A stretch of DNA of 63,522 nt, filler included, from Basidiobolus meristosporus CBS 931.73 (GCA_002104905.1; 3 parts of 3 records of this genome joined end to end with filler, not necessarily neighbours in it), one strand, 5' to 3'; positions 9,052 through 35,750 are shown, numbered from the whole stretch's first letter. Notes: generated by a model not told the origin, from the sequence alone. Program-made: numbers and translations.

Positions 9052-9775
9052 TAATCAATGTGTCTGCATTCATTTACTCTGTGGGACAGTAAAATAAGCT
9101 GGCCAAGCTATTCTCTCTAGCTTCACATTTAAATGATTCCTAATATGTATGTGCTTGGTTCTAGCATTAAGAGTTAGATATTTACCTAAGTGTACATATC
9201 CTTGATTATCTATAAATGAGGCTGTAGATGCGTTTTGACATAATTATGGGTCTCTGAAAAGCTTTCTTAACCACATTGCTTCTCTTGTAGCTTTGCAGGC
9301 TGTCATATACTCTGCCTCTGTGGTGGAAAGTTATCTAGTAGACTGCTCTCTTAAATGCCATGAAAATGCTCCTTTACAGTAACAAAAGGTGTATCCTTTA
9401 GTGGATAATTTGTCTCCTAAGTTTTGTCTCCTAAGTCTTGTCCCCAATCATCTTGAGAGTATCCCACAAGATCCTGCTCAGAATCCTTATAGGTGTTCCT
9501 CAAGCAGATTTCAGCAGTTCCTTTCAAATATCTAAAAGCTAGCATAACTGCTGCAATATTATCAGAGCTACAGTTTGGATTATGCTGATTGGGAGCTCAC
9601 ACTGAATAAGAGATACCTGGACATGCTCCAAGAATGTTATGAATCTGACTGTCAGCCATAGATTGGTAAGGGAGTTCTGGGCTATAAGATGGAACCACAC
9701 TCTCTTGATAAGCTTAGATTTTGACCAAGCCATGGTTAATCTCCATGGGATAGCTGCCAGTTTACAGTCTTCCAT
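9052..9775 (-). mobile_element. Older degenerate Copia A-lineage RT/RNaseH relic
   Basis: Diverged similarity to A pol 3' end, with stops and frameshifts. Confidence 0.8.
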
Positions 9776-10124
9776 TGTTGTAAAATTTGTAATTTCCACC
9801 TAAATATTCACCTAACTTAGTCACTTAGATCATTACCCTCAAATCCTAGAGAATACTGACCAAATTCCTTGTTGGGATTTACTTAGAATATTTTCACCAA
9901 AATGCCAGGTACCCAGAACATGAAAATTCTCAAAGTTGTCCAAACAGCCCCAAACTTTGCACACATGTTCTTGGGACCTTCCTTAACCTATTCTATGTGT
10001 TTGTAATGCCAAGACCAGGTAAAAGTATAAATACTACTTTTACATTCAATAAATCATTAAGTGAAAACCACATAATCTACTTGTTCTCCCAATCACTTCC
10101 AGTATCTCCAAGACTCTTACAACA

Positions 10125-10137
10125 GGTTATGAGCCCC
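10125..10137 (+). promoter_or_regulatory. Primer-binding site complementary to the tRNAiMet anticodon stem-loop (half-tRNA priming)
   Basis: GGTTATGAGCCCC immediately after the LTR, the same type as Ty5 and Drosophila copia. Also in A1, A3, A4, B and C. Confidence 0.88.
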
Positions 10138-13100
10138 AAGCTGTCACTCTCTGCATTGTCTACTACTGCTATTACTGGAGTTTTTCCCTCTGCTGAAAAG
10201 TTGGATGGATCTAACTACCAAGTGTGGAAGGTGAAGATGAAGATGCTGCTACAAGAAAGAGGCCTTTGGGATATTGTCATGGGAGAAGAATGCACTCCTA
10301 AAAACGTGGGAGAGGGAGCCTTGAAGTACCAGAAGAAAGAACAAAGTGCCTTTAACTGCATTTGCCTTAATGTCAAGGACAAATTGCTAATTCAATGCTC
10401 AAGAGCAAAAACGGCAAAAAATTCCTGGAAAGCATTGGAAGACACCTACCAGTCATGTTCAGCTGCCAAGAAAATGTATCTGAGAAGAAAATTCTTTACT
10501 ACAAAGATGCTGCCAGGAGAAGAAATGGAAAATCTAATTAACAGAATTACCCTGCTGGTAGATGAGATGGAATCTGTGGGCGTACCAACTACTGATGAGG
10601 ATGTGATAGTTACCATCCTGAATAGCCTGACAGACGAGTTTCAGGGCCTTGTATCAGCCCTTGAGTCCAGAACTGAAGATTTGACCTTAAATTATGTATA
10701 TGGAAGGCTCCAGGATGAAGAATTAAGAAAATCAAGCGCCAATAAGAAGGAAGAAGAAAATGCTTTAATAAGCAATGATAACCAACAAAGGAGGTACCCA
10801 AGACCCTACAAAGGCAACAGCAACCTATTTTGCAACTACTGCAAAAGGAAAGGACACACATCAGACCGGTGTTTCACAAAGAGAGATTATCAGCAAAAGA
10901 AGCCTGAATATGGAAATGCTGCAACAACTGAAGATAGACTATTCATATTTGCACTAAATATGACCACTAACAAGGATTCTCAGACGTGGTATATTGACTC
11001 TGGAGCTTCTCAACACTTTACACACCAAAAAGAACTTTTTACCCAATTTCAAGAAATTCCAATTAAGAAGGTTTTCATGGGTGACGATAGAACACTTGAT
11101 GCAGTGGGAGAAGGAACTATCCAAGTAAACCTTAGAAGCAGTGAAGGAAGCCATACACTGACCTTTAAAGAAGTACTCTATGTACCAGAAATAGCCAAGA
11201 ACCTACTCTCTGTAAGCAAGGCCACAGCAGAAGGACTCAGTTTCAGTTTTGACAATTCTGGATGCAGGATCACTGATCCAAATGGTGCTCATATTGCTTT
11301 GGGCATCAGAGATCAGAATCTATACAAGTTGACTTATATTCCATCATATCTGGAAGCCACTATAAGTAACTTAAATGAAGAAACACCAATGCTTTCGCAC
11401 AGGAGATTTGGACACATCAATTTTGATTATTTGCATAAAATGATCAAAGATCAGCTAATTTCTGGAGTGAAAATTGATCCCCCAGCTATTTTGGAGCACT
11501 GTGAAGCCTGCATATATGGGAAACAAGCCAGACAACTGTTCAAGAGCTCTGGGTTAATCAATACTAAGAAAAAATTAGATCTAATTCACTCAGATCTGTG
11601 TGGACCTATGCAAAATTTATCCTTAGGCGGGATGAAGTATTTAATCACTTTTATTGATGATTATACAAGATACACATGGGTCTACTTCATGGAGAGAAAG
11701 GAAGAAGCTCTGTCTAAGTTCAGGGAGTTTAAAGCCATGGTGGAGAGAGAAACTGGTGAAAAAATCAAGAAAATACGCTCTGACAATGGTGGAGAATATA
11801 CCTCAAAACTCCTCATCCACTTCTGCAAAATTCATGGGATAAAGCAAGAGACTACTGTACCATACTCCCCACAGCAAAATGGAGTAGCAGAACGAGCTAA
11901 CAGATCAATAATTGATATGGCAAGATCTATGATCCATAATCAAAAATTATCCTATGATTTTTGGGCGGAATCAGTTGCCACTGCTGTATATCCTGAAAAT
12001 AGGAGTTATAACAGAATACTTTGTGATTCTACTCTGTTTGAAGCATGGTATGGATACAGACCAAGTGCAGAACATCTAAGAATATTTGGGTGTACAGCAT
12101 ATGCCAAAAAACTGCCCAGAAATCAGTCAAAACTTGAGCCAGGAAGTGTAAAATGCATATTTTTGGGCTACTGCAATGAGAGTAAGGCATACAGACTCTA
12201 CAATACCAAAGCAAAGAAGCTGATCAAGTCCAGGGATGTGTTGTCCGATCAAAATTCAAAATTTTCACAAATAATGACATCAGATGATGACAAAAATCTG
12301 ATCTCAAGTCCACCAATTGTCAGGATTGAATCAGAGCAAAACAATGAAGATTTTTTCACTCCAGAGGACTCTACAACTGTGGTTCAGCCAGAATTGGTGC
12401 CCAGGAATATCCCAGAAGTGATCATTCCAGTATCAAATGCCTGGAGATCCAATCGGACAAGAAATAGCCCAAATTACTACACCAATGAGGGTACAAACTT
12501 AGCCTATGCCTATTCAGTCCATATTGATGAGCCCCAGACTGTAAAAGAGGCGCTAAATAGCCCTCAGACAAAGTTTTGGAGATCTGCAATGACTGAGGAA
12601 TATCGGGCCCTGATGGAAAATCAAACTTGGGACTTAGTCAAATTACCAATCAACCAAAAATCAATTGGATGCAGATGGGTCTTCAAGACAAAATACAAGG
12701 CTGATGGTACAATTGAAAGATACAAAGCAAGACTTGTAGCCAAAGGATATTCTCAAACAAAAGGACTTGACTATACTGAGACCTTTGCACCGGTAGCCAA
12801 GTTTAATTCCACCAGATTAATTTTGGCTATTGAAGCCAAATATAAGTTTTTTATTCATCAAATGGATGTAAAAACTGCATTTTTGAATGAAGAACTTGAT
12901 GAGGACATGTATATGAACCAGCCTGATGGGCTTATTGACCAAGATAACCCCCATTTGGTCTGCAAGCTAAAAAGTCACTATATGGTCTCAAACAATCACC
13001 AAGAGCCTGGAATTGCAAGATAGATTTTTATTTGGAATCCTTGAGTTTCAAAAGAAGTAATGCTGACTATAGTATATACTATAAGCCAGATAGAGCAAAT

Positions 13101-14039
13101 CCAGTTCTATTAGCTCTATATGTGGATGATCTTATTATAGCCGCCAATAACCTAGAAACATTGGAAGAGACTAAATCCAGCCTATCTAAGAAGTTCAAGA
13201 TGTCTGATTTAGGAGAACTTAATTACTACTTAGGGATCAGGTTCTCCATAGACAGAAGTACCCAGACTATTACCCTAAGCCAATCCAAGTATATTCAAGA
13301 TATACTAAAGAAGTACAAAATGGAAGACTGTAAACCGGCAGCTACCCCAATGGAGACAAACCTTAACTTGGTCAAAACTCAACCAAATCAAGAGAGCTTG
13401 GTGCCATCTGAAAGCCCTGACTTTGCTTATCAATCTATGGTCAACAGTCTAATATCTATCATGCTTGGAACACGCCCAGTTATCTCATATTCAGTGGGAG
13501 TTGTCAGCCAACATAATCAGAGCTATAGATCTGATCATGTTGCAGCAGTTAAGCAGATTTTTAGATACCTAAAAGGAACTGCTGATATTTGCTTAAGATA
13601 CACTTATAAGGACTCAGAACAAGATCTTGTGGGATACTCTGATGCAGATTGGGGACAAAATTTAGTAGACAGAAGATCCACCACAGGATACACCTTTCTT
13701 CACTGTAAAGGAGCAATTTCATGGAATTCAAGAAAGCAACCAACCATAGCACTTTCTACCACAGAGGCAGAGTACATGGCAGCCTGTGAAGCTACAAAAG
13801 AACCAATGTGGTTAAGGAAGCTGTTTACAGATTTAGGTCTATGTCAAGAAATGCCTATTACCTTATTTCAAGATAATCAAGGATGTATACAATTAGGTAG
13901 AAATCCAACTTTTCATGCTAGAACCAAGCACATAGATATTAGACATCATTTCATACGTGAAGCTATAGAAATTAACTTAGTTGGCTTAGTTTACTGTCCT
14001 ACATATGAGATGATTGCAGACATATTTACCAGACCATAA
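10129..14039 (+). pseudogene. A2 gag-pol polyprotein with one frameshift (about 12968) and a late premature stop
   Basis: ORFs 9997-13023 and 13032-14039 join if one T is restored (GCTAAAAAG vs GCTTAAAAAG in other copies). TTA>TAA at 14037-14039 truncates the last ~17 residues. Confidence 0.88.
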
Positions 14040-14539
14040 GCTAGAGACAAGTTTGAATATCTTAGGTCAAAATTAGGAATAGTCAGTATGAACATTTAGC
14101 TGAGTGGGAGTGTTGTAAAAAGTTGCATTTCCACCTAAATATTCACCTAACTTAGTCACTTAGATCATTACCTTCAAATCCTAGAGAATACTGACCAAAT
14201 TCCTTGATGGGATTTACTTAATATATTTTCACCAAAATACCAGGTACCCAGAACATGAAAATTCTCAAAGTTGTCCAAACAGCCCCAAACTTTGCACGCA
14301 TGCTCTTGGGACCTTCCTTAACCTATTCTATGTGTTTTCAATGCCAAGAGCAGGTAAAAGCATAAATACAACTTTTACATTCAATAAATCATTAAGTGAA
14401 AACCATATAATCTACTTGTTCTCCCAATCACTTCCAATATCTCCAAGACTCTTACAACAGTTGTAACTATCAAACTATCACCTAAATGTACATGCCTGGA
14501 GAAAGGCTTTGCATTATATTGCACTACTAGAGTTGAAAT

Positions 14540-15810
14540 TGTTGTAAGAGTCTTGGAGATATTAGAAGAGATTGGGAGAACAAGTAGATTATGTGGTTTT
14601 CACTTTATGATTTATTGAATGTAAAAGTAGTATTTATACTTTTGCATGGTATTGGCATAATAAGCATGTAGAACAGGTTAAGGAAAGTCCCAAGAATATG
14701 CATACAAAGTCTGAGGCTGTTTGGACAACTCTGAGATTCTCCATGTTCTTGGTACCTGGTACTTTGGTGAAAAATTCCAAGTAAATCCCAGCAAGGAATT
14801 TGATCAGTATTCTCTAGGATTTGAAGGTGATGATCTAAGTGACTCAGTTAGGTGAATACTTAGGAGGTATTTTGAACTTCTTACAACACTCCCACTCAGC
14901 TAAATGTTCACACTTACTAGTCCTTATTTTGGCCTAAGATATTCAAACTTGTCTCTAGCTAATGGTTTGGTTAATATGTCTGCAATCATTTCATCTGAAG
15001 GACAGTAAGCTAAGCTAAGTTATTCTCTATAGCTTCACATATGAAACAATTTCTAATATCTATGTGCCTAGTTCTAGCACAAAAAGTTAGATTTCTACCT
15101 AATTGTATACATCCTTGATTATCTTGAATTAAAGTAATAGGTGTTTTTGACATAGGCCTGAATTGGTAAAAGCTTTCTTAGCCACATTGCTTCTTTTGTA
15201 GCTTCATAGGCTGTCACATACTCTGCCTCTGTGGTAGAACATGCCATAGTTGGTTGCTTTCTTGAATTCCATGAAATTGCTGCTTTACAGTAAAGAAAGG
15301 TGTATCCTGTGGTGGATCTTCTGTCTTCCAAATTTTGTCCCCAATCTGCATTAGAGTATCCCACAAGATCCTGTTCTGAATCCTTATAAGTATATCTTAA
15401 GCAGATATCAGCAGTTCCTTTTAGGTATCTAAAAATCTGCTTAACTGCTTCAATATGGTCAGATCCATAGTTCTGATTATGTTGGCTGACAACTCCCACT
15501 GAATATGAGAAATCTGGACATGTTCCAAGCATGATATACATCAGACTGCTAACCATAGATTGATAAGGAAAGTCAGGGCTTTCAGATGGCACCAAGTACT
15601 CTTGAATTGGTTGAGTTTTGATCAAGTTAAGGTGTGTCTCCATCAGGGTAGCTGTCAGTTTACAGTCTTCCATTTTGTACTTCTTTAGTATATCTTGAAT
15701 ATACTTGAATTGGCTTAGGGTAATAGTCTGGGTGCCTTTGTTCACGGAGAACTTAATCCCTAAGTAGTAACTGAGTTCTCCTAGATCAGACATCTTGAAC
15801 TCCTTAGATA
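14540..15810 (-). mobile_element. Copia A 3' fragment (LTR 14540-14888, PPT, RT/RNaseH)
   Basis: 349-bp LTR plus ORF 15119-15838 with RT/RNaseH motifs; truncated at about 15810. Confidence 0.9.
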
Positions 15811-17811: not shown

Positions 17812-17911
17812 NNNNNNNNNNNNNNNNNNNNNNNNNNNNNNNNNNNNNNNNNNNNTTAATTAATTAANNNNNNNNNNNNNNNNNNNNNNNNNNNNNNNNN
17901 NNNNNNNNNNN
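17812..17911. other. Scaffold gap: 100 bp of N with TTAATTAATTAA linker
   Basis: N run with a central six-frame-stop 12-mer, same layout as the gap at 35751. Confidence 0.95.
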
Positions 17912-20900
17912 AACTCCCACTGAATATGAGATATCTGGACGTGTTCCAAGCATGATATATATCAGACTGCCAACCATAGATTGATAAGGAAAGTCAGGGC
18001 TTTCAGATGGCACCAAGCTCTCTTGATTTGGTTGAGTTTTGACCAAGTTAAGGTTTGTCTCCATTGGGGTAGCTGCTGGTTTACAGTCTTCCATTTTGTA
18101 CTTCTTTAGTATATCTTGAATATACTTGGATTGGCTTAGGGTAATAGTCTGGGTACTTCTGTCTATGGAGAACTTAATCCCTAAGTAGTAACTAAGTTCT
18201 CCTAGATTGGACATCTTGAACTCCTTAGATAGGCTGGATTTAGTCTCTTCCAATGTTTCTAGGTTATTGGCGGCTATAATAAGATCATCCACATATAGAG
18301 CTAATAGAACTGGATTTGCTCTATCTGGCTTATAGTATATACTATAGTCAGCATTACTTCTTTTGAAACTCAAAGATTCCAAATAAGAATCTATCTTACA
18401 ATTCCAGGCTCTTGGTGATTGTTTGAGCCCATATAGTGACTTTTTAAGCTTGCAGACCAAATGGGGGTTATTTTGGTCAACAAACCCATCAGGCTGGTCC
18501 ATATACACGTCCTCATCAAGTTCTCCATTCAAAAATGCAGTTTTTACATCCATTTGATGAATAAAAAACTTATATTTTGCTGCAATAGCCAAAATTAATC
18601 TGATGGAATTAAACTTGGCTACCGGTGCAAAGGTCTCAGTATAGTCAAGTCCTTTTGTTTGAGAGTATCCTTTGGCTACAAGTCTTGCTTTGTATCTTTC
18701 AATTGTACCATCAGCCTTGTATTTTGTCCTGAAGACCCATCTGCATCCAATTGATTTTTGGTTGATTGGTAATTTGACTAAGTCCCAAGTTTGATTTTTC
18801 ATCAGTGCCTGATATTCCTCAGTCATTGCAGATCTCCAAAACTTTGTCTGAGGGCTATTTAGGGCCTCTTTTACAGTCTGGGGTTCACCAACATGGACTG
18901 AATAGGCATAGGCTAAGTTTGTACCCTCATTGATATAGTAATTTGGGCTATTTCTTGTCCAATTGGATCTCCGGGCATTTGATACTGGAATGATCACTTC
19001 TGGGATATTCCTGGGCACTGATTCTGGCTGAACCACGGTTGTAGAGTCCTCTGGAGTGAAAAAATTTCCATTGTTTTGCTCTGATTCAATCCTGACAATT
19101 GGTGGACTTGAGATCAAATTTTTGTCATCATCTGATGTCATTTTTTGTGAAAATTTTGAATTTTCATCAAACAACACATCCCTGGACTTGATCAGCTTCT
19201 TTGCTTTGGTATTGTAGAGTCTGTATGCCTTACTCTCATTGCAGTAGCCCAAAAATATGCATTTTACACTTTTTGGCTCAAATTTTGACTGATTTCCGGC
19301 CAGTTTTTTGGCATATGCTGTACACCCAAATATTCTTAGATGTTCTGCACTTGGTCTGTATCCATACCATGCTTCAAATGGAGTAGAATCACAAAGTATT
19401 CTGTTATAACTCCTATTTTTAAGGTATACAGCAGTAGCAACTGATTCCGCCCAAAAATCATAGGATAATCTTTGATCATGGATCATAGATCTTGCCATAT
19501 CAATTATTGATCTGTTAGCTTGTTCTGCTACTCCATTTTGCTGTGGGGAGTATGGTACAGTAGTCTCTTGCTTTATCCCATGAATTTTGCAGAAGTGGAT
19601 GAAGAGTTTTGAGGTATATTCTCCACCATTGTCAGAGCGTATTTTCTTGATTTTTTCACCAGTTTCTCTCTCCACCATGGCTTTAAACTCCCTGAACTTA
19701 GACAGAGCTTCTTCCTTTCTCTCCATGAAGTAGACCCATGTGTATCTTCTATAATCATCAATAAAAGTGATTAAATACTTCATCCCGCCTAACAATAAAT
19801 TTTCCATAGGTCCACACAGATCTGAGTGAATTAGATCTAATTTTTTCTTAGTTTTGATTAACCCAGAGCTCTTGAACGGTTGTCTGGCTTGTTTCCCATA
19901 TATGCAGGCTTCACAGTGCTCCAAATTAGCTGGGGGATCAATTTTCACTCCAAAAATTAGCTGATCTTTGATCATTTTACACAAATAATCAAAATTGATG
20001 TGTCCAAATATCCTGTGCCAAAGCATTGGTGTTTCTTCATTTAAGTTACTTATATTGGCTTCCAGATATGATGGAATATAAGTCAACTTGTATAGATTCT
20101 GATCTCTGATGCCCAAAGCAATATGAGCACCATTTGGATCAGTGATCCTGCATCCAGAATTGTCAAAACTGAAACTGAGTCCTTCTGCTGTGGCCTTGCT
20201 TACATAGAGTAGATTCTTGGCTATTTCTGGTACATAGAGTACTTCTTTAAAGGTCAGTGTATGGCTTCCTTCACTGCTTCTTAGGTTTACTTGAATAGCT
20301 CCTTCTCCCACTGCATCAAATGTTCTATTGGCACCCATGAAAACCTTCTTAATTGGAATTTCTTGATATTGGGTAAAAAGTTCTTTTTGGTGTTTAAAGT
20401 GTTGAGATGCTCCAGAGTCAATATACCACGTCTGAGAATCCTTGTTTGTGGTCATATTTAGTGCAGATATGAATAGTCTATCTTCAGTTGTTGCAGCATT
20501 TCCATGTTCAGGCTTCTTTTGCTGATAATCTCTCTTTTTGAAACAACAGTCTGATGTGTGTCCTTTCCTTTTGCAGTAGTTGCAAATAGGTTGCTGTTGC
20601 CTTTGTAGGGTCTTGGGTACCTCCCTTGTTGGTTATCATTGCTTATTAAAGCATTTTCTTCTTCCTTCTTATTGGCGCTTGATTTTCTTAATTCTTCATC
20701 CAGGAGCCTTCCATATACGTAATTTAAGGTCAAATCTTCAGTTCTGGACTCTAGGGCTGATACAAGGCCCTGAAACTTGTCTGTCAGGCTATTCAGGATG
20801 GTAACTATCACATCCTCATCAGTAGTTGGTACGCCTACAGATTCCATCTCATCTACCAGCAGGGTAATTCTGTTAATTAGATTTTTCATTTCTTCTCCTG

Positions 20901-21638
20901 GCAGCATCTTTGTAGTAAAGAATTTTCTTCTCAGATACATTTTCTTGGCAGCTGAACATGACTGGTAGGTGTCTTCCAATGCTTTCCAGGCATTTTTTGC
21001 CGTTTTTGCTCTTGAGCATTGAATTAGCAATTTGTCCTTGACATTAAGGCAAATGCAGTTAAAGGCACTTTGTTCTTTCTTCTGGTACTTTAAGGCTTCC
21101 TCTCCCACGTTTTTAGGAGGGCATTCTTCTCCCATGACAATATCCCAAAGGCCTCTTTCTTGTAGCAGCATCTTCATCTTCACCTTCCACACTTGGTAGT
21201 TAGATCCATCCAACTTTTCAGCAGAGGGAAAAATTCCAGTAATAGCAGTAGTAGAAATTGCAGAGAGTGACAGCTCAGGGCTCATAACCTGTTGTAGGAG
21301 TCTTGGAGATATTGGAAGTGATTGGGAGAACAAGTAGATTATGTGGTTTTCACTTAATGATTTATTGAATGTAAAAGTAGTATTTATACTTTTATCTGGT
21401 CTTGGCATTACAAACACGTAGAATAGGTTAAGGAAGGTCCCAAGAACATGTGTGCAAAGTTTGGGGCTGTTTGGACAACTTTGAGAATTTTGATGTTCTG
21501 GGTACCTGGTATTTTGGTGAAAATATTCTAAGTAAATCCCAACAAGGAATTTGGTCAGTATTTTCTAGGATTTGAAGGTAATGATCTAAGTGACTAAGTT
21601 AGGTGAATATTTAGGTGGAAATACAAATTTTTACAACA
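17912..21638 (-). mobile_element. Copia A element A3 (5' LTR 21290-21638, gag-pol to the gap)
   Basis: PBS at 21278-21289; gag ORF 20458-21417 and pol ORF from 20455 separated by a 1-nt deletion near 20585; 3' end lost in the gap. Confidence 0.93.
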
Positions 21639-24170
21639 CTTAGTACCTTTCTTAACCTATTCTACATGTTTGTAATGCCAAGACCATGTAACAGTATAAA
21701 TACTACTTGTATATTCAATAAATCATTAAGTGAAAGCCACATAATCTACTTTTCCTCCCAATCACTTCCAATATCTCCAAGACTCTTATAACACCTTTTA
21801 GATATCTAAGAATCTGCTTAACTGCTGCAGAATGATCAGTTCCATAGTTCTTATTAAACTGGCTGAAAATTCCCACTGATTATGAGATGTATGTACATGT
21901 TCCAAGCATTTTATACATCAGACTGCTGACCAGAGATTATTAAGGGAATTTTGGGCTTTCAGATGGCACCAAGCTTTCTTGGTTTGGTAGTGTTTTAGCC
22001 AAGCTAAGGCTTGTCTACATTGGGGCAGCTGTTGGTTTACAGTATTCCATTGGATACTTCTTTAAAATATCTTGAGTATTCTTAGATTTGCTTAGGGTAA
22101 TAGTCTGGGTACTACTCTCTATGGAAACCCATTTCCCTAAGAAGTAACTGAGCTCTCCTAGACTGGATATCTTGAGATCCTTGGATTGGTTGAATTTTAT
22201 CTCTCCAATGTTTCCAAGTTGTTGGTAGCTATAAACAGATCATCCACACAAGGAGCTGATAGATCAGGATTTGCTATATCTAGCATATAGTAGATACTAT
22301 AGTCAGCAGTACACCCTTTGGAAGCTCAAATATTCCAAATAACAATCTATCTTGCAATTCAAGGCTCTTGGTGATTGTATGCACCATACAGAAATTCTTT
22401 AAGCTTGCAGACCAAATGAGGGTTATCTTAGTCAACAAGCCCATCAGACTGGTTCATTTACATGTACTCACTGAGTTCCCTACTCAGAAGTGCAGTTCTC
22501 ACACTCATTTGATGAGTAAAAAATGTATATTTGGCTGCAATAGCCAATACCAATCAGATAGAATCAAACTTGGCTACTGGTGCAAAGGACTCAATTAAGT
22601 CAAGTCCTTTTGTTTGTGAGGATTGTTTGGCCAGAGGTCTTGCTTTGTATCTTTCAATTGTACCATCAGTGTTGTATTTTGTTTGCACAGTCATCAAAAC
22701 ATGTTCTTTGTGGCTTCCCTGCCTAGAGCATGTAAAAGAACAAAAGCCACCTTTTCATTCAGTGGTTCATTGAGTGGAAGCCACATAACCTACTTGTCTT
22801 CCAATCAATTTCAATATTTCCAAAACTCAGGTGGCAGCATTAGTAGCAGTAGTAGGCAGCTAACAGAGTGAGAGCTCAGAAAGTAACAGCTCAGGGCCCA
22901 TGACTTGTTGAGATAGGTTTTGAGTCATGGTGATGACTAGGAGAACCATTAGATTGTTCCAATTTTACTTAATGATTCACTGAATGTAAATGTTGTATTT
23001 CCACTCTGGCATGACCTTGGCAAGACAAGCACATGATATTAGTCTAGAAGTACTCTGAAAGCCTATGTGCCAAGCTTGAGGCTATAGAGAAAGCTTTGAG
23101 AGTTTTCATTCTCCAAGTACCTGAAGTTTTGGTTAAAATACTCCAAGCCAATCCCAACAAGGAACTTATGATAACTTCCCCAAGACTTGTAGACTATGAT
23201 CTATTATTAAAATTTGTAATTCCATCTAAATACTCACCTGAATTAGTCACTTAGATCATTACCTACAAATCTCAGAGAATAATAAGTTCCTTTTGGGATT
23301 TATTTATATCATACTCACCAAAATATCAGGTACCCAGAGCATGAAAATTAGATAGGTTGGCCAAACAGCCCCAAATGTTGCACACATGCTCTTGGGACCT
23401 TCCTAAACCTATTCTATGAGCTTTTTATGCCAAGACTATGTAAAAGTATAAACACTACCTTTACATACAAAGACCATTAAATGAAAACTTCATAATCTAC
23501 TTGTTCTGCCAATCACTTCCAGTATCTTCAAGACTCTTACAACATGATGTACTTGACTAAGTTAGGTTAGTACTTAAGTGTCTCTATAGAACCTACAACA
23601 CTTACATTCTCATGGATATTTCTTATGAAATTCCTGTAAGATAGTTGAGTTGGGAAATATTGGGGCTTGTAGACTAAATGAATTGTGTTGTAGTCATCTT
23701 GGATATAGCACTATGATATGTTTAGTTCTGTATATCAAGGAATGCTGCATATTAGTACTCCCTGGCTAGGCTGCTGATAAATGTACAAGACCAAAAGTAA
23801 TGCAACTATGTGCCTTTTGAATGTGTGTATGCCTAGTCCATACTGAGTGTTGTTAGTGCTTTGCAGATGCTGAAAGTGATTAGGAGTACATTGCGACTAG
23901 ATGGTTTTTGCTTGATGATTTTTTGATGGTCAAAGTGGTACATCTGTCTTTCCTAGAAAGGTCCCAAACGCTTGTGCGCAATGTTTGGAGTCTCTTGTAC
24001 AACTGAAAAGAAATCTATGTACTGGGTATCTGGTATTTTGGCGAAAATGTTTGAAGTAAATCCCGACAGAGAGTTCGGGCAGGAAATAGTGAAGTTCATA
24101 GTCTGTCACCTAAGCGACTTGATGAATAATGGAACTATTTCGGCGCAAATATGACATTTACAACAAATGT
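21639..24170. mobile_element. Cluster of old Copia A-lineage relics (partial LTRs, RT 21794-22700, diverged LTRs)
   Basis: Recognisable LTR and RT similarity in both orientations, heavily mutated; boundaries approximate. Confidence 0.75.
23202..23544 (+). mobile_element. Solo Copia A LTR inserted in an older LTR
   Basis: Flanks TGATC/TGATG (4 of 5 TSD match); the interrupted minus-strand LTR resumes on the right. Confidence 0.7.
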
Positions 24171-25950: not shown

Positions 25951-27165
25951 ATGCCTTCCAAATCGCCGATAGCTTCGTATCCAATGCTTTCCCATCTACA
26001 TCTCTACCACGAGGCTCCCAACAAGGGGATCCACATTCCATACCACTCACAGGAAAGTCTGGCCAGTCAGTACTCCACCGGCCTTTGCGACAGCTCTACC
26101 CACCTCGACACCAGCACAACCACTCCCTCGGACGATTGCTTCACCGCCGGCATGTCCTCTCTATATAAAGTCCCCAGTAGATTTGTGTTCAGAGATAGCA
26201 AGAAGGATCGCAAATCAACTCAGCAAAAGAAGTTCGGATTCTTCAGTCTGCGCAAGAAGCACCTGAAATCACAGCACGAGTCCAAGGCCCGCTCCAATGA
26301 TTACATGCCACTGCTGGACGCGCTAAGAAAGCGAAACGCCCCATCCATCAATCAGCTGTATGGTGATTACACCAATGACATCTGCAGTGGAGCCGGTGGT
26401 GGCGTTCGACAAACCTACTGTCCACGCACAGGCAGGAAATACGCCGTCAAAAGCTTCCGTGCCAAGAGGCCTGACGAAGACGAGCACCGCTATTACGAGT
26501 GGGTCAGCAATGAGGTTTACATCACCGCCTCCCTGGTTCATGAAAATGTCATCCAGACTCTGGATGTCATCATGGAGAACAATGAGATCCACGAGGTGAT
26601 GGAATACTGCCCTCAGGACATGTTCACTGTTGTCAAGGAGAACCAGCTGACTCAGCAGGAGATCGATATTTACTTCAGCCAGTTGATGCGCGGACTTGCC
26701 TACTTGCACCACCGCGGGGTGGCGCACAGAGATCTTAAACTTGAGAATCTCTGTGTGGATGAAAACGGAACCTTAAAGATCATTGACTTCGGGTGCGCCT
26801 TCATCTTCCTGGATCCCTTAAGCGAAGGGAACCGAGCCAAAGCCAGCGAGCTAACCGGCTCCGATCCATACATAGCACCAGAGGTGTTCGACGGTCGACC
26901 ATACGACGCAGCCAAGGCTGACATCTGGTCAGCAGGCATCATCTATCTCTGCATGGTCCTCAGGAAGTTCCCATGGGACATGGCTAAACCCTCGGTCAAA
27001 AATTACGAGATGTACCTTGAATTCCGCAAGAATGGCGAGTCATTCACACGCATCCCTGAGGCGGCGTTCCCATTAATTCGTAAGATGCTGGACCCCAATC
27101 CTGACACGCGTATCACCGTGGATGAGATCTTTCAGGATAGATGGTTCCAGTCCATCATGATTTAG
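25951..27165 (+). CDS. Ser/Thr protein kinase, Sat4/Hal4 (Npr1/Hal5 group)-like; 404 aa, no introns
   Basis: SGAGGGVR Gly-loop, YAVK, HRDLKLENL, IIDFG, GSDPYIAPE, KADIWS; TATAAAA at about 25872. Confidence 0.92.
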   Translation: MPSKSPIASYPMLSHLHLYHEAPNKGIHIPYHSQESLASQYSTGLCDSSTHLDTSTTTPSDDCFTAGMSSLYKVPSRFVFRDSKKDRKSTQQKKFGFFSLRKKHLKSQHESKARSNDYMPLLDALRKRNAPSINQLYGDYTNDICSGAGGGVRQTYCPRTGRKYAVKSFRAKRPDEDEHRYYEWVSNEVYITASLVHENVIQTLDVIMENNEIHEVMEYCPQDMFTVVKENQLTQQEIDIYFSQLMRGLAYLHHRGVAHRDLKLENLCVDENGTLKIIDFGCAFIFLDPLSEGNRAKASELTGSDPYIAPEVFDGRPYDAAKADIWSAGIIYLCMVLRKFPWDMAKPSVKNYEMYLEFRKNGESFTRIPEAAFPLIRKMLDPNPDTRITVDEIFQDRWFQSIMI

Positions 27166-27884: not shown

Positions 27885-28005
27885 ACACATTCTACATGTT
27901 TTAAAAGCTTAAATATCATCTCTACATCCAATAAACATAAGGTGAAAACCACACAATCTACTTGTTCTCCCAATCACTTCCAACATCTCCAAAACTCTAA
28001 CAACA
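27885..28005 (+). mobile_element. Partial Copia A-lineage LTR (3' third) within the gene island
   Basis: GTGAAAACCAC..TCTACTTGTTCTCCCAATCACTTCC..CAACA matches the LTR end. Confidence 0.75.
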
Positions 28006-28688
28006 CTCAGTATGCAACAGGTATACTCACGTTTAAAAAGATGGTTGCTACATTGCCTTTTGTTTTGTATATTTTTCAACAGCCTGGCTGCAGAGTGCTT
28101 GTATGTAGCATTCCTTGCTATACAGAAATACAAACATTCTCTCTTGGTAATGAGTTTTGGGTGATAGAACCCAAGAAAAAATGGCGGCAATATTTTGAAA
28201 AAAGTCGCCCATTGATATATCATTACCAACATATGCCAGCATGAAGACCACCATTCCTTGATAGCTACTGTTGAAAACACCAAACAAAGAATTCCACCAA
28301 GAGTCAGAAATGTGAAGCGATCCAGAATAAAATAATGCTGAATAAGTAAAGCACCTATAACACTCGGAACATTTTCCCGTTTATCGATGGGACTAATCGC
28401 TGATACATGGATAATCAGCGTCCAGATCCATCCCCAGTAGCAGTGCTCGCATGACGGAAACAGATCAATCACCTTCAAAAACCAAATCAATTGGAGTGGA
28501 AAACCCTAAAAAACCCTAGCCCAATTCCTTATCACCTTGATCTTCGGATACTATATAGTCTAGACTTGGCCAATTGGGCCTAACCTAGATCCAAACTTCC
28601 TACAGAGTCTATTGTTGGCTGGCCGATAATTTAGAGATCCAGCATGTATAAATATCTTACAGTTGCCCGCAGTTGGAGCATCTTTGAA

Positions 28689-28910
28689 ATGTCCACACTT
28701 TTACTTCGCAGCCCGGTCACCAAGTCCTTAGGAACCCAAGTAATCTTACCGCTAACAGCCGTCACTGGTGTTGCCGCTGTGGGACTGGGATATTTCCTTA
28801 CCAGCATTACCAACGAGGAATACGCCGCCAGGTATCAATCGAACCCTGTGATGAGGACAACAACCGCATATAATCCCAACTCCAAAATTGGCGAATACAC
28901 TTGGTGGTAG
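28689..28910 (+). CDS. 73-aa single-pass membrane microprotein of unknown function
   Basis: MSTLLLRSPVTKSLG + hydrophobic VILPLTAVTGVAAVGLGYFL + C-terminal YTWW; TATAAATA about 35 nt upstream; decayed paralog at 30116-30258. Confidence 0.6.
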   Translation: MSTLLLRSPVTKSLGTQVILPLTAVTGVAAVGLGYFLTSITNEEYAARYQSNPVMRTTTAYNPNSKIGEYTWW

Positions 28911-29016
28911 ACACCATACAAAAATCTACACTGTAGACTTAATTAGAGCTTAATTTGTAAATAATAAAAGAACCTCATAGACGAATCCGATTGCCCTTTT
29001 ACTTCCATGCTTGTTG

Positions 29017-29808
29017 TTAAGCTCGTTTTTGACACCACACGATGTCAGTAACGTACGGGAATTTGACAAGACCTGACTCCTTGTCTATCTCCATGTCCTC
29101 CGCAGAGTTGAGCGTGTCCAAGATTTGTTGCTTCAAGGTTTCCTTCTGCTTGGCATCCAGCGATGCGACATAGCTCTTGCTGGATATACGGGTCCAAATG
29201 GTCTGTTTATCTGACAATACCTCACGTTACAAATGGGCTTCAGTGGGTGGGTCAAAGAGGCGGCGATATTCTTCGGTCTCGAATACTTTTCTCCACAAGC
29301 CCAACCGGTACTGGGGTGAGCCGCGTTCATGCTTTTCATAAATATCTCTGATGGCCCCAACCCATTTGGCTTGAGCTCTGTCTTCCAAGTTCCATATCAG
29401 AGCTAGGTAACCGTTTGGTTTCAACACTCTGCTGATCTCTTGGATGGCAGCGACATCACTGAACCAGTGAAAGGCCTGAGCAACAAAGACAACATCCAAC
29501 GAGCTATCTTCCACTGGAATTTTCCAGGCTGTGCCCTCCAAGATTGGGACGTCAGGAAGCACCTGAGAGAACTTGGCTCTCATGTTGGCCGCTAGTTCTA
29601 CAGCAACCAAGTCATAATTGAATGGCTGCAGCAGACGAGTGAATACTCCTGTCCCCGCTCCTAGGTCCAAAACACGTGACTCGCCAGATTTAAGGCCCAG
29701 CTTCGTTCGCAGAAGTTCGATCGCCTCAGGAGGATAGCTGGGACGTGCTGTTTCATATGCATTTGTGTCCAACTCAAAGCCCTTTGCAGCGGTTTCATGC
29801 ACATTCAT
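29017..29808 (-). pseudogene. SAM methyltransferase copy 1 with an in-frame nonsense codon
   Basis: About 98% identical to copy 2; CAA>TAA at 29229-29227, frame continues to the stop at 29017; also P>L in VEPAANM. Confidence 0.85.
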
Positions 29809-30115: not shown

Positions 30116-30258
30116 ATCTTACCGTTAACAGCCGTCACTGGTGTCGCCGCTGTGGGACTGGAATATTTCCTTACTAGGATCGATAGTAGCTCACTACATC
30201 AGGACTAAGAATAGCTAATCCAAACTCCTCCGAGGTAAGCAAATACACTTGGTGGTAG
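30116..30258 (+). pseudogene. Decayed copy of the 73-aa microprotein gene
   Basis: ILPLTAVTGVAAVGLEYFLT and NPNS..KYTWW* remain, but there is no start (upstream in-frame TAA) and the middle has an indel and a stop. Confidence 0.7.
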
Positions 30259-30364
30259 ACACCATTCGTATATCTACACTGTAGACTTTATTAAGCCTTG
30301 ATTTGACAATAATAAAAGAATCCCATAGACGAATCCGATTGCCCTTTTACTTCCATGCTTGTTG

Positions 30365-31213
30365 TTAAGCTTGTTTTTGACACCACACGATGTCAGTAAC
30401 GTATGGGAATTTGACAAGACCTGACTCCTTGTCTATCTCCATGTCCTCCGCAGAGTTGAGCGTGTCCAAGATTTGTTGCTTCAAGGTTTCCTTCTGCTCG
30501 GCATCCAGCGACGCGACATAGCTCTTGCTGGATATACGGGTCCAAATGGTCTGTTTATCCGACAATACCTCACGTTGCAAATGGGCCTCAGTGGGTGGGT
30601 CAAAGAGGCAGCGATATTCTTCGGTCTCGAATACTTTTCTCCACAAGCCCAACCGGTACTGGGGTGAGCCACGTTCATGCTTTTCATAAATATCTCTGAT
30701 GGCCCCAACCCACTTGGCTTGAGCTCTGTCTTCCAAGTTCCATATCAGAGCTAGGTAACCGTTTGGTTTCAACACTCTGCTGATCTCTTGGATGGCAGCG
30801 ACATCACTGAACCAGTGAAAGGCCTGAGCAACAAAGACAACATCCAACGAGCTATCTTCCACTGGAATTTTCCAGGCTGTGCCCTCCAAGATTGGGACGT
30901 CAGGAAGCACCTGAGAGAACTTGGCTCTCATGTTGGCCGCTGGTTCTACAGCCACCAAGTCATAATTGAATGGCTGCAGCAGACGAGTGAATATTCCCGT
31001 CCCCGCTCCTAGGTCCAAAACACGTGACTCGCCAGATTTAAGGCCCAGCTTCGTTCGCAGAAGTTCGATCGCCTCAGGAGGATAGCTGGGACGTGCTGTT
31101 TCATATGCATTTGTGTCCAACTCAAATCCCCTTGCGGCTATATCATGTACTTGCTTAACTGAAGCATTACGAGTATCGTCACTCGCGTTTGTGGGCACCT
31201 TAGGAGACTCCAT
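30365..31213 (-). CDS. Class I SAM-dependent methyltransferase (Methyltransf_11-like), 282 aa, no introns
   Basis: YETARPSYP, motif I VLDLGAGTG, VEP, LDVVFVAQAFHWF, VLKPNGYLALIWN. Confidence 0.92.
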   Translation of the reverse strand: MESPKVPTNASDDTRNASVKQVHDIAARGFELDTNAYETARPSYPPEAIELLRTKLGLKSGESRVLDLGAGTGIFTRLLQPFNYDLVAVEPAANMRAKFSQVLPDVPILEGTAWKIPVEDSSLDVVFVAQAFHWFSDVAAIQEISRVLKPNGYLALIWNLEDRAQAKWVGAIRDIYEKHERGSPQYRLGLWRKVFETEEYRCLFDPPTEAHLQREVLSDKQTIWTRISSKSYVASLDAEQKETLKQQILDTLNSAEDMEIDKESGLVKFPYVTDIVWCQKQA

Positions 31214-32138
31214 AATGATTTAAAACCCGAACATCTAACTGGTTTATATAAGCCAATATCATGACGTAGTAGTCTATGAGTCACCATTGTCACGTACAGA
31301 TAAGCCGAATATAGTGAGCGTACCAAACAATATTATTAGTTAGGGGTCGAAGATGTTGCCGGGGTTAAGTCAGTTTACTACGCTTGGTATATACAAGTTT
31401 CTTTACAAAAATTAGAATACTCTGGGGTTTAGGCAGTTCTTCAAATGTACATCACCACGTCCCAAGAATACTCTTGTTCGGTGGTATCCATCACTCAGCT
31501 GTTACGGGATTTACGTCGTTTCAACCAAATGGATGGATGATTTCGTGAATGCCAGACCAAGGGATGGTCCGAGGTAAGATCGGGCTTTTCGTTTTTAGCA
31601 TTTGAAGATGTGGAATATTGCTGGGTAAAGGCCAAAGAGCATTGTACAAATAGCACTGAGAGGACTCCAACTGCAGGGATTAAGCAGAGGAATAAGATAC
31701 CTAGCATGCAGGCGTAATCGCTAGTAATAGGGAGTGTATATTAGGTGGGTGAAGAAGAACATAAGGATAAGTCGGAGTTAAATAGGAGGGGTCTGAGGAT
31801 GGCGAATGGTCATAATATATCGACGGGAATACAACCAAATTGCCAACCATCTATCGTCCAACATCCCTGAAAACCTGTAGGTGTTTTATGATATCACCCT
31901 CAGGAAACAGTAGCTGATGCAAATCATGGATATAGCGTCAATGCAGAAATCAATTAATTAAAGTCCAAAAAGTAAGCAGCCATTTTAGCGAACCTAACCC
32001 TAGATTTGCATAGTAGAGAGCAATCGTTCATCTAAGTGTGCTATCATTTAATACAAGTCGTGCGAGGGACAACTGGTTGATGAGATTTGGGGACGAATCT
32101 CAAACCCAAAGGTTAGTATCATCTTAGGAAATCAATAT

Positions 32139-32180
32139 AATGCCTTTTGATGCCTTTTAATGCCTTTTAATGCTTTTAAT
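32139..32180 (+). repeat. Four tandem copies of AATGCCTTTT-like 10-mer upstream of hemN
   Basis: AATGCCTTTT GATGCCTTTT AATGCCTTTT AATGCTTTT. Confidence 0.75.
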
Positions 32181-32512
32181 CCCATTTATATAAGGTGGCC
32201 CGGAGAAGGATGGCATTTATAGGTATCCGGAACCAAATATCTAAAATAGGCTACAATCCGAAGAATTGGAGCCCCGACAATATGTATATATACCATCAAT
32301 TGCGAGTATCACGATTACTTAATCATAGTCGAGGCAACGACTCTCCGAGTGCTTATTGGTGTACATAGAAGTTGTTGGTAGTCTGGAATCAAATCGACAA
32401 TCTAGACTGAGCTTTTCCGGTGGTTGACTAATACAAATTGGTGGCGACCAGTGTAGATAAAACCTTCCTCCCCGGATACATTGCTTTTACCAGCAAATCT
32501 CTACTAACTGTC

Positions 32513-34330
32513 ATGGATGAAACAGTAGGCCGTACTTCAACGTTCACCATATCGTTCTACATACTTCTAGGCACCGTAGTCCTATCCTATCTCATCCCGC
32601 GACTATTCACCGCAAAGGAGAAGGATTCCACCCAATGCCCCAAGAGCGTTTCTACCCAATTTCCTGAGGTCAAGGACAATGCTGATGCTAAGACCTCCGA
32701 ACAAACTACTGAGGGCTCGAAGATCAAAAAGCATAAGCCTGCCAGATCACTAGAAGCAGAAAGAAAGCTCAAGAAGTCAGTCTTGGACAGCTTGGCCGAC
32801 ATCGAGGATCTGGTGTGTAAATACGACGTTCCCGCACCCCGATACACCAGTTATCCACCTGTCCCCTTCTGGAACAAAACAGAAACCGCGCCTACACAAG
32901 ACGACTGGCTGAAGGTTGTCAAGAAATGCTTCGACGAGACAAACGATGACATTGGAATGGCCATTTATGTACATTTGCCGTACTGCGAGCAGTAAGTAGT
33001 ATCAAAGCATTGTGGTGGCAATATTGTACTGACCCTAAGCTCAATCCATCACCAGACTGTGCCACTACTGCGCCTGCACGAAGGTGATCACCAAGTATCA
33101 TGATAAGGTCGAAGACCCCTACATCGATACGGTTCTCAAGGAATGGGCCATCTATAGAGACTATTTGATTTCCACCTCGGGAAAGCCCAACATCTGTGAG
33201 ATTTACTTGGGCGGGGGCACGCCAACCTTCTTCTCGCCTAGCAATTTGCAACGGTTGATCAATGGGTTGCTGGAGGGTTGCTCTCTTCATCCCTCGCACG
33301 AGTTCAGTTTCGAGGCACATCCAAACAGCACAAGTGAAGAGCATTTGCAGATATTGTATGATCTTGGATTCAGGAAGCTTAGCCTGGGGATTCAAGACTT
33401 TGATCCGGATGTGCAGCAAATCATCAACAGAGTCCAAACCTACGAAACCGTGGACAATGTCATGAACATGGCGCGGAGGATAGGCTACACCTCCATCTGC
33501 TTTGGTATGTTTCTGTATCCTGTGGACGTGTGGGGCCGTTTTGACTCATTCCATTTTTAGACTTGATCTATGGCCTTCCAAACCAAACCATGGAGACTAC
33601 GCAGCAGACTATTACCATGGTCGGCTCCCTGCAGCCAGACCGCATCGCCTACTACAGCTATGCGCATGTCCCGTGGGTAAATCCTCGCCAGAGAAACTTT
33701 ACCGAGCATCACCTGCCCTCTAAGACCGATAAGCGCGCTCTTTACGAGTTAGGCAAGAAGCTATTTGCCGATATGGGTTATAGGGATGTTGGTATGGACC
33801 ATTTCGCCCTACCCACAGATCAGCTTTTCATTGGCAAGCAGAACGGTACCTTACACAGAAACTTCATGGGTTATGTGGCCAAGAAAACCCAGCTTCTTGT
33901 CGGTTTGGGTATGTCCGCCATCAGTGACGCCAAATATGGCTATGCCCAAAATGAGAAGAATGTCAAGGATTACACCAAGAGAGTTGAGAATGGCGAGCTC
34001 CCTCTCATCAAGGGCCATGAGATGACTAGGGAGGATTTGATCATCAAAAAGGCCATTTTGGATGTTGCTTGCCAAGGAAAGGTTGTAATCACCAAAGAGT
34101 TGGCACAACTGCTCCCGGATGAGTTTTATGTCGAGCTGAAGGAGATGAAAGAAGAGGGGATCGTGGAATTTTCCGGGTCTCCAGTCACTAGAGATGACAA
34201 GGTTTTGCTAGAGGGAGAGTTGGTGGTACTAAGTGACTATTTGGGCACCATCTTCCTACGAAATGTATGTAAATTATTTGATCCTACTCTCAGGAAGGTG
34301 AAGTATGGTGGATTTAGTCAAGCCATCTAG
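32513..34330 (+). CDS. hemN: Oxygen-independent coproporphyrinogen III oxidase (radical SAM HemN) with N-terminal TM extension; exons 32513-32991, 33056-33504, 33561-34330; 565 aa
   Basis: Splicing (GTAAGT..CAG, GTATGT..TAG) gives 1698 nt and restores YVHLPYCEQLCHYCAC (CxxxCxxC) and SICFDLIYGLP. Also KYDVPAPRYTSYP, LGGGTP, GIQDFD..INRVQ, YSYAHVP, GMDHFA, LHRNFMGY. Confidence 0.92.
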
Positions 34331-34544
34331 AAGTAAATAGTAGCTACCCTATATTAATTTGCATTTGAACCCAATAAAACCCAATCAATAGTTTCGGCTC
34401 ATTTTCAGTTTATTTTTCGCAAACCATGCCTTACTATCTTTAGATTAGTCTAGTTTGAAGTAACTACTATTTCAAGCAGCATGGGTTCTCTGCGATTTAG
34501 GGTTAGGAATACGACAACGGAAAGTTCATATACCTTAGGATTCT

Positions 34545-35750
34545 GTTTAACTTAGTTACTTGGATCATATTCTTTGAATCTTACAATGTCTTGTTCAAAT
34601 TCTTTATTGGAATTCACTAGGAATATTTTACCAAAATATCAGGTTCCCAGAAAATGAGAATTGTCAAAGTCGTCCAAAGGCCTCCTAACTTTGCGCACAT
34701 GTTATTGGGACCTTATTAAACATTACTTCACGTGCTGGTGCTGTCAAGATCATGTTAAAGTAACCACTTCACTTGTAGATTCATTAAATAATAAATGATA
34801 ATCTACTTGTTCTCGCAGTCACCTCAAATACCTCAAGAACTCTGACAACTGGTCTCAAGGGCCAAAGGTAGCGTCACAACTTGAACCAAGTGTATTGGCG
34901 AACTCAAATCGCATGTAATTCACTTATTATCTTATTGAGTTGAAATAGAGTACTTGTATAGTTAGGTAAGCTTTGTAAAGATTATAGTAAGAAGCTACAT
35001 CGATGGTTCCAAACAGCTGTGTGCATAGTTTGGGGGCTTTTTGACATATTTAAAAATACTGATAACTTCTAGACCTTGACTTATTCTAGGAGATAGCCAG
35101 TTTCTTTTCTAAACGTGCGGGAATAACTCATTGCTTAGCAAAAAGCTAGGTAGAGTTTTATGCTCTCCGGGATGTTTAGGTGCAAACTGAGTGTGGTAAA
35201 GGTTGTACTCACACCTGAGTATTCACTTACCTTGGTTACTTAGATCATGGACTACAAATCTTAGAGAATTCAGGCCCAGCTCCTTCTGTGTATTTACTTT
35301 AAATATCTTCACTAAAATATCAAATACCCTTATGATGAAAAATCTCAGAGTTACCAAACAGCCCCAAACTCTTCACACATGATCTTGAAACTTTCCTAAA
35401 CCTATTTTACGGGTTTTTTTGCCAAGACCATCAAAAAGTATATAAACTACCTCTATATTTAACAAATTATTAAGTGAAAACCACAAAATATACTTATGCT
35501 GTCAATCACTTCTAATATTTCTGAAACTCAGACAATACTACGTACTTACATCTGCTGTAAGAGTCTTGGAGATATTGGAAGTGATTGGGGAGAAGTAGTA
35601 TATTATATGGTTTTCACTAAATGATTTATTGAATGTAAAAGTAGTATTTAGACTTTTACATGGTCTTAATATAACTAACACGCAAAGTAGGCTTATGAAG
35701 GTCCCAAGAAAATGTGTGTAAAGTTTGGGGCTGTTTGAGCAACTTATCTA
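34545..35750. mobile_element. Old Copia A-lineage LTR relics (34545-34849 +, 35212-35536 +, 35553-35750 -)
   Basis: Diverged similarity to the A LTR; boundaries approximate. Confidence 0.75.

Follow-up and report, generated by a model that had tools for sequence, protein, structure and literature searches.

The fungus Basidiobolus meristosporus carries a real, expressed and selectively maintained HemN gene; the enzyme family is a known one, the host an unexpected one. The gene lies in the window, by which we mean the whole stretch of 63,522 nucleotides that was analysed (three parts of the genome of strain CBS 931.73, GCA_002104905.1, joined end to end with filler). We consider it probable, at roughly three chances in four, that a bona fide HemN (CgdH, coproporphyrinogen III dehydrogenase, a radical SAM enzyme) passed horizontally from a member of the Bacteroidota to an ancestor of Basidiobolus. 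The closest relatives sampled are Marinifilaceae and Cytophagales, the transfer would predate the split between the clades of B. meristosporus and B. ranarum, and the gene would afterwards have gained two spliceosomal introns, a host-like base composition and an N-terminal extension of ~98 aa with a hydrophobic anchor.

Reading the stretch from 32300 to 34600 and splicing it by hand gave an intact gene of three exons on the plus strand, with a coding sequence of 1698 nt that runs from the ATG at 32513 to a stop codon ending at 34330 and is translated into 565 aa. The first-pass annotation had called this same model (three exons, 565 aa, 32513-34330), and its coordinates turned out to be exact. 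Exon 1 (32513..32991) encodes residues 1-159 together with 2 nt of codon 160 and contains the N-terminal extension, the PRYTSYP segment, Tyr152, His154 and the first Cys (C158) of the CxxxCxxC motif. This motif is interrupted by intron 1 (32992..33055; 64 nt, GTAAGT..CAG, phase 2), which splits the codon of Gln160. Exon 2 (33056..33504) holds the radical SAM core, recognized by Pfam PF04055 at 3.1e-13 and including C162, C165, C167, GGGTP, E246, Q273 and R285, and it is followed by intron 2 (33505..33560; 56 nt, GTATGT..TAG, phase 1), located inside the codon of Asp310. Exon 3 (33561..34330, stop included) encodes what remains of the barrel, together with the C-terminal domain of HemN, and extends to the conserved C-terminal FSxAI. 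Every motif named at first pass was found in the translation: KYDVPAPRYTSYP (residues 103-115), CEQLCHYCAC (158-167), GGGTP (212), FSFEAHPN (243), HLQILYDLGFR (256), GIQDFD (271), INR (283), MDHFA (388) and LHRNFMGY (407). On the same strand, 43 nt past the stop, an AATAAA (34373..34378) is a possible polyadenylation signal, as a consensus match only. Rfam gave no match in the piece of the window that holds the gene.

The three exons are collinear with the HemN equivalog model of NCBIfam (TIGR00538), matching its positions 6-60, 63-205 and 208-454 with E-values of 1.4e-06, 1.5e-35 and 2.8e-57, respectively. The corresponding 27.4, 122.9 and 194.6 bits add up to 344.9, above the curated cut-off of 324.95, this total being a sum of per-exon scores and not one score of the spliced protein. 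The models of the related families all remain below their cut-offs, with 83.8 + 25.6 = ~109 bits against 205.4 for HemW (TIGR00539), 75 + 15.4 bits against 321.4 for HemZ (TIGR03994) and 68.5 + 29.9 bits against 400 for ChuW/HutW (TIGR04107). Exon 3 also aligns with residues 210-454 of the structure 1OLT of E. coli HemN, the characterised oxygen-independent coproporphyrinogen III oxidase/dehydrogenase (E 1.9e-36); given this match and the collinear exon matches to TIGR00538, the set of motifs is far beyond chance. The PRYTSYP segment, which is specific to HemN and lacking in HemW/RSAD1, is present and aligned with E. coli R22-P27, and the HemW motif HNxxYW is absent from the Basidiobolus protein. 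As for Pfam, the radical SAM domain in exon 2 was the only one detected; HemN_C was not, as is also the case for most of the listed bacterial HemN matches. We further compared residues that, in part from the work on 1OLT, we take to be SAM-binding or catalytic, using the MG1655 record as the E. coli HemN reference. The radical SAM CxxxCxxC and the fourth Cys (E. coli C62, C66, C69 and C71) are kept in this protein and in its B. ranarum orthologue (see below), as are Y56, H58, G111-G113, T114, E145, Q172, R184, D209, F310 and I329. The sole differences among the checked residues, F240Y and Q311M, are common to every aligned Bacteroidota HemN. Another part of the residue list was drawn from published work (PMC10680763). 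Judged by its sequence, the protein is a canonical HemN/CgdH and not of the RSAD1/HemW type usual in eukaryotes, the distinction that the first-pass annotation had drawn.

Certain proteins with a HemN annotation serve other functions. It is conceivable that the gene was transferred and is expressed, and that its product, like several "HemN" paralogues, acts in vivo not as a coproporphyrinogen dehydrogenase but as a HemW-like haem chaperone, in secondary metabolism or as a class C radical SAM methyltransferase. The functions of HemN-like proteins are diverse and misannotation is common among them (PMC10114718; PMC13564367), the CPDH of Toxoplasma complements bacteria without a haem phenotype in the parasite (PMC10680763), and many secondary-metabolism genes have been gained by transfer in Basidiobolus. 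However, the HemN score is at equivalog level with the HemW, HemZ and ChuW/HutW models far lower, the full HemN-specific residue set, the PRYTSYP segment and the C-terminal domain are all kept, and no biosynthetic cluster surrounds the gene. We therefore regard a different role as rather unlikely and read the protein as a HemN proper.

Four public runs contain all or part of the stretch. In one of them (X3), a contig of 1698 nt spans 32340-34157 and skips exactly 32991->33056 and 33503->33560, with GT..AG ends. This run comes from the study that also yielded the probable source sample and comprises 27 Mb of contigs, its kind of data being only a guess; since its depth is zero over the intergenic intervals 31970-32303 and 34308-34641 and differs strongly from gene to gene, we read X3 as a transcript assembly and not as DNA. 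Because the X3 contig skips both introns exactly, the HemN gene is transcribed and spliced. The start of this contig sets the minimum extent of the 5' UTR (32340..32512, plus strand), and as no ATG occurs within 32340-32512, position 32513 is the first AUG of the X3 transcript. A run from another study (X4) contributed two short contigs, about 97% identical.

The surroundings of the gene are those of a fungal genome. On the same piece lie a copia-type retrotransposon with gag and pol ORFs (17864-21417, minus strand), a Ser/Thr protein kinase (25951..27165, plus strand) and a fungal SAM-dependent methyltransferase (30365..31213, minus strand), the latter being one of two tandem copies (29227-29808 and 30365-31213). 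Identity of the methyltransferase to a B. meristosporus CBS 931.73 protein amounts to 99%, and to a B. ranarum protein to 78%, in line with the fungal neighbours and fungal genome asserted at first pass. The GenBank contig MCFE01000598.1 of the same strain (54.8 kb) differs from the window by 2 nt in its copy of the gene, which is already called there as an unnamed 565-aa radical SAM product. Kinase and methyltransferase are synteny anchors: in B. ranarum (JASJQH010006924.1), the same two genes are neighbours of a radical SAM gene of 560 aa. Spliced by hand, this orthologue is intact and 80% identical overall, and its introns of 67 nt and 58 nt sit at exactly the same two codon positions. The spliceosomal introns claimed by the first-pass annotation are thus both skipped in the X3 contig and conserved in position in a second species. 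A preprint divides the genus into two major clades, those of B. meristosporus and B. ranarum (10.1101/2025.03.31.646025), so that the HemN gene and its introns are older than that split.

These observations bear on whether the HemN could stem from a co-sequenced Bacteroidota, through bacterial contamination or an assembly chimera. The best matches are all bacterial, and Basidiobolus has been isolated from guts rich in Bacteroidota (PMC7466969). Nevertheless, two GT..AG introns are removed in the transcript contig, an independent assembly of another species contains the same locus with the same neighbours and intron positions, and fungal genes and a copia element share the contig. Moreover, the GC3 of the gene (0.60) is host-like, the neighbouring genes ranging from 0.51 to 0.65, and the closest bacterium is only about 56% identical. 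On the strength of the spliced introns, the B. ranarum synteny, the fungal flanks and the host-like GC3, we rejected contamination, whose probability we consider negligible.

Between the two Basidiobolus species, synonymous sites are saturated (pS 0.80), and pN amounts to 0.081 in the HemN core and to 0.35 in the N-terminal extension. The gene is under strong purifying selection. A decaying or neutral transferred gene without function would fit the outcome for one further run (X5), which is labelled as the same species and is ~86% identical in the methyltransferase flank, and in which no HemN contig was found at a likeness of at least 80%. Such a gap in contigs proves nothing by itself, and presence/absence variation of the HemN gene within the genus is possible. 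That the gene is decaying is very improbable, given that its frame is intact in both species in the face of saturated synonymous sites and a low core pN, that it is spliced and present in a transcript assembly, and that all catalytic residues are conserved.

Regarding the origin of the gene, a HMMER search with exon 3 against 1.84 billion representative proteins (50% clustering) returned no long match above about 51% identity. The best full-length matches are proteins of roughly 450 aa, and those bearing a name are Bacteroidota. When exon 3 was compared with a 90%-clustered database (proteins of 140-446 aa), only bacterial names appeared, on fragments of at most 51% identity, and in the ESM Atlas the nearest cluster is bacterial, Bacteroidota being most frequent in it. 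A pattern scan of the GTDB species-representative prokaryote genomes, biased by its use of the motifs Y[SG]YAHVPW and RNFMGY, assigned almost all of its best 80 loci to Bacteroidota (orders Cytophagales, Marinilabiliales, Sphingobacteriales and Flavobacteriales), with a minority from a few Campylobacterota, Balneolota and others. Over its full length, the protein is 56% identical to those of Labilibaculum and Ancylomarina, 54% to that of Rufibacter and 33% to that of E. coli. Among the best matches of the length-filtered, clustered protein searches, there was no eukaryote-named or N-terminally extended relative. Three long or N-terminally extended matches (P0068, P0105 and P0133) bear no eukaryotic label, and the sole named one is bacterial; an N-terminally short match (P0002), considered as a eukaryotic exon, was rejected because it is a bacterial gene that lies close to the beginning of a contig of low coverage. 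A search with a mixed alignment (A2), made of the match P0001 and the fungal exon pieces, recovered relatives of P0001 only, its profile being dominated by the bacterial row.

In phylogenies of the spliced protein, the Basidiobolus pair is nested within Bacteroidota HemN in each of three trees. FastTree on 273 rows placed it as sister to a Marinifilaceae clade (96), a quick IQ-TREE run (LG+C20, 104 rows) gave the same placement, and a careful IQ-TREE run (LG+C20, 104 rows) again recovered the pair as sister to Marinifilaceae (98/73). In the latter tree, the nested sets around the pair received 99/96 (with Cytophagales and Marinilabiliales), 98/91 (22 rows) and 99/95 (49 rows). AU tests in which 15 or 47 bacterial rows were kept together without Basidiobolus, groups that were picked after the tree was seen, yielded p-AU values of 0.078 and 0.081 at a cost of 48.3 (15 rows) and 53.6 (47 rows) log-likelihood units, and neither arrangement is rejected at 0.05. 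The "Bacteroidetes-like" impression recorded in the first-pass annotation is thus upheld by the best named matches and by the position inside Bacteroidota HemN in the three trees, although the AU tests do not quite reject a placement just outside. The fungal stem branch is long (0.83), which, together with only about 56% identity to the nearest bacteria, suggests either that the donor is unsampled or that the transfer is old.

The same AU tests, in which placements outside the Bacteroidota sets are not rejected, are compatible with vertical inheritance of an ancient eukaryotic or fungal HemN that was lost everywhere but in Basidiobolus, or with a transfer from another eukaryote; so are the long fungal branch and the fact that the searches for eukaryotic homologues were length-filtered and clustered. 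Yet the pair sits several well-supported nodes deep in Bacteroidota HemN in three analyses, the Bacteroidota-specific states F240Y and Q311M are present, and no eukaryote-named or N-terminally extended relative is among the best matches. In addition, CgdH has been described as confined to Gram-negative prokaryotes (PMC13564367). We hold such a history to be improbable; from the matches, shared residues and trees, HemN was most likely taken from Bacteroidota.

The first ~98 residues of the protein (32513..32806, plus strand) form an extension that is eukaryote-specific in alignment A2, present in B. ranarum too and without counterpart in any aligned bacterial homologue. To judge from this alignment, it is a fungal addition. 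It contains a hydrophobic stretch at about residues 10-32 (32540..32608, plus strand), a predicted membrane anchor, which includes the best Kyte-Doolittle 19-residue window of each protein (1.89 in B. meristosporus, 2.21 in B. ranarum) and is followed by basic residues and then by a linker that is charged and little conserved. Acidic residues are present at the N-terminus, unlike in a matrix presequence. From these features, we infer that the protein is anchored by its N-terminus, either at the ER or at the outer membrane of mitochondria, which would hold the catalytic domain in the cytosol.

The enzyme activity and the physiological role of the protein, like its membrane tethering, are proposals. 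A [4Fe-4S] cluster on C158, C162 and C165 would reductively cleave SAM, and the resulting 5'-deoxyadenosyl radical would drive the oxidative decarboxylation of the two propionates of coproporphyrinogen III, giving protoporphyrinogen IX without O2. Hem13 is normally the oxygen-limited step. The bacterial-type enzyme may thereby offer an alternative to the O2-dependent Hem13 under the hypoxia of amphibian and reptile guts, bearing in mind that HemN would bypass at most one of the two O2-requiring steps of haem synthesis. It is tempting to speculate further, in a scenario that we think has less than an even chance of being right, that Basidiobolus is the first eukaryote with a canonical bacterial CgdH at the coproporphyrinogen step, that the newly evolved anchor tethers this oxygen-sensitive enzyme to the ER or to the outer membrane of mitochondria, on the cytosolic side, that a host diflavin reductase with its flavodoxin-like FMN domain replaces the bacterial flavodoxin as electron donor, and that haem is made in this way in the anoxic herptile gut.

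Our literature search found no paper linking Basidiobolus with coproporphyrinogen or describing a Basidiobolus HemN gene; as far as can be seen, the gene is in GenBank with its identity and significance undescribed. Reviews describe CgdH as confined to Gram-negative prokaryotes (PMC13564367), and a fungal HemN that is canonical, intact, spliced and maintained by selection is a clean counter-example to that confinement. It also provides a tractable test case for the way in which an oxygen-labile radical SAM enzyme of bacterial origin is fitted to the Fe-S assembly, reductant supply and compartmentation of a eukaryote, for how a gut fungus copes with hypoxia, and for how transferred genes acquire introns and targeting segments, and should be relevant to specialists in both haem biosynthesis and gene transfer.

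Among known systems, the closest likeness is to the HemN/CgdH of Bacteroidota, here compared in Marinifilaceae (Labilibaculum, Ancylomarina, Marinifilum) and Cytophagales (Pontibacter, Rufibacter, Fulvivirga). The whole enzyme of ~455 aa is collinear with these proteins down to the C-terminal FSxAI at 54-56% identity, and it shares with them Y at E. coli position 240, M at 311 and the motifs YSYAHVPW and RNFMGY, whereas the fungal gene adds the two spliceosomal introns, the extension of ~98 aa with its hydrophobic anchor, the eukaryotic flanks and the host-like GC3. With E. coli HemN (1OLT), the fungal protein has in common the domain order, the [4Fe-4S] cysteines, the fourth Cys, GGGT and the checked residues, and it differs by an overall identity of 33%, by F240Y and Q311M and by its N-terminal extension. 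RSAD1/HemW, a haem chaperone and the usual HemN-like protein of eukaryotes, shares the radical SAM fold and CxxxCxxC; unlike it, the Basidiobolus protein has PRYTSYP and lacks HNxxYW. Proteins of the RSAD1 type do not act as coproporphyrinogen oxidase (PMC11834973; PMC10114718), and pathway surveys list many eukaryotic "HemN" proteins without separating them from RSAD1/HemW (PMC4870792; PMC11914136; PMC10114718).

TgCPDH of Toxoplasma gondii, reportedly the first eukaryotic protein of the CPDH-like kind (PMC10680763), is likewise a eukaryotic radical SAM protein and a proposed hypoxic substitute for the O2-dependent CPOX, and it keeps Y56, H58, G111, G113 and CxxxCxxC (PMC10680763). However, it shares just 10.4% identity with E. 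coli HemN and has a long additional tail at its C-terminus (PMC10680763), while the Basidiobolus protein is 33% identical to E. coli HemN and passes the equivalog threshold. Finally, gut-associated bacteria, Bacteroidetes among them, were proposed by Tabima et al. (2020) as the source of 2-5% of the genes in Basidiobolus (PMC7466969). Our case resembles theirs in the genus, in the embedding of transferred genes among fungal genes and in their host-like composition; their study differs in its focus on secondary metabolism, and its main text does not deal with HemN, haem or radical SAM (PMC7466969). Beside the secondary-metabolism transfers described for Basidiobolus, the HemN gene thus stands as an example from primary metabolism.

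Between the window and the B. meristosporus GenBank contig that carries the same HemN gene (MCFE01000598.1; window 32513-34330), mismatches occur at positions 32524 and 32665, the third positions of HemN codons 4 and 51, and the public sequencing run X1 likewise shows a difference at both. A second run, X5, whose species label is the same as that of the best-matching run, covers the methyltransferase flank (30432-31716) at approximately 86% identity, and no X5 contig matched the HemN region (32137-34474) at a likeness of at least 80%. HemN may be absent or much diverged in the X5 lineage, or the gap may be technical.

Besides the contig of spliced HemN, run X3, which we read as a transcript assembly, contains another contig that meets the window only from 33060 onward. 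Its letters before the join translate to YVHVPFCAHI, and the CHYC that it has in common with the window comes next. This contig is probably the transcript of a different HemN-family radical SAM gene, possibly the RSAD1/HemW orthologue, whose match to the window is confined to the surroundings of the cluster motif.

Immediately 3' of HemN, the depth of run X1 reaches 5,000 to 15,000, indicating a high-copy repeat family. Short repeats akin to the terminal regions of the nearby copia element are dispersed on either side of the gene (21290-21800, 23200-23550, 27900-28140, and 34630-35750). The copia-type LTR retrotransposon itself (17864-21417, minus strand) encodes gag in a long ORF of 319 aa and pol in one of 863 aa that is truncated at the edge of the piece, with Pfam domains RVT_2, rve, gag_pre-integrs, and Retrotran_gag_2. 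Adjoining it is a second, degenerate pol fragment (21868-22682; 83% identity to 17912-18727).

A SAM-dependent methyltransferase is tandemly duplicated on the minus strand (28743-29808 and 30116-31213), with 92% identity between the flanks across 300 nt. Its nearest listed homologues beyond Basidiobolus are those of a liverwort (Riccia, 55-56%), mosses (Ceratodon, 46%; Physcomitrium, 44%), and Balamuthia (46%). That these are equal to or closer than non-Basidiobolus fungi among the matches listed suggests a patchy distribution of this methyltransferase.

Finally, the HemN tree, whose loci concerned here come from a scan of prokaryote genomes (L029, L038, and L040 from Campylobacterota; L033 from Balneolaceae), places the Sulfurovum and Campylobacteraceae proteins within a Flavobacteriales-type clade, beside Lutibacter, with support of 100/99 for the Campylobacterota pair. 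This placement suggests that HemN has been transferred between bacterial phyla as well.
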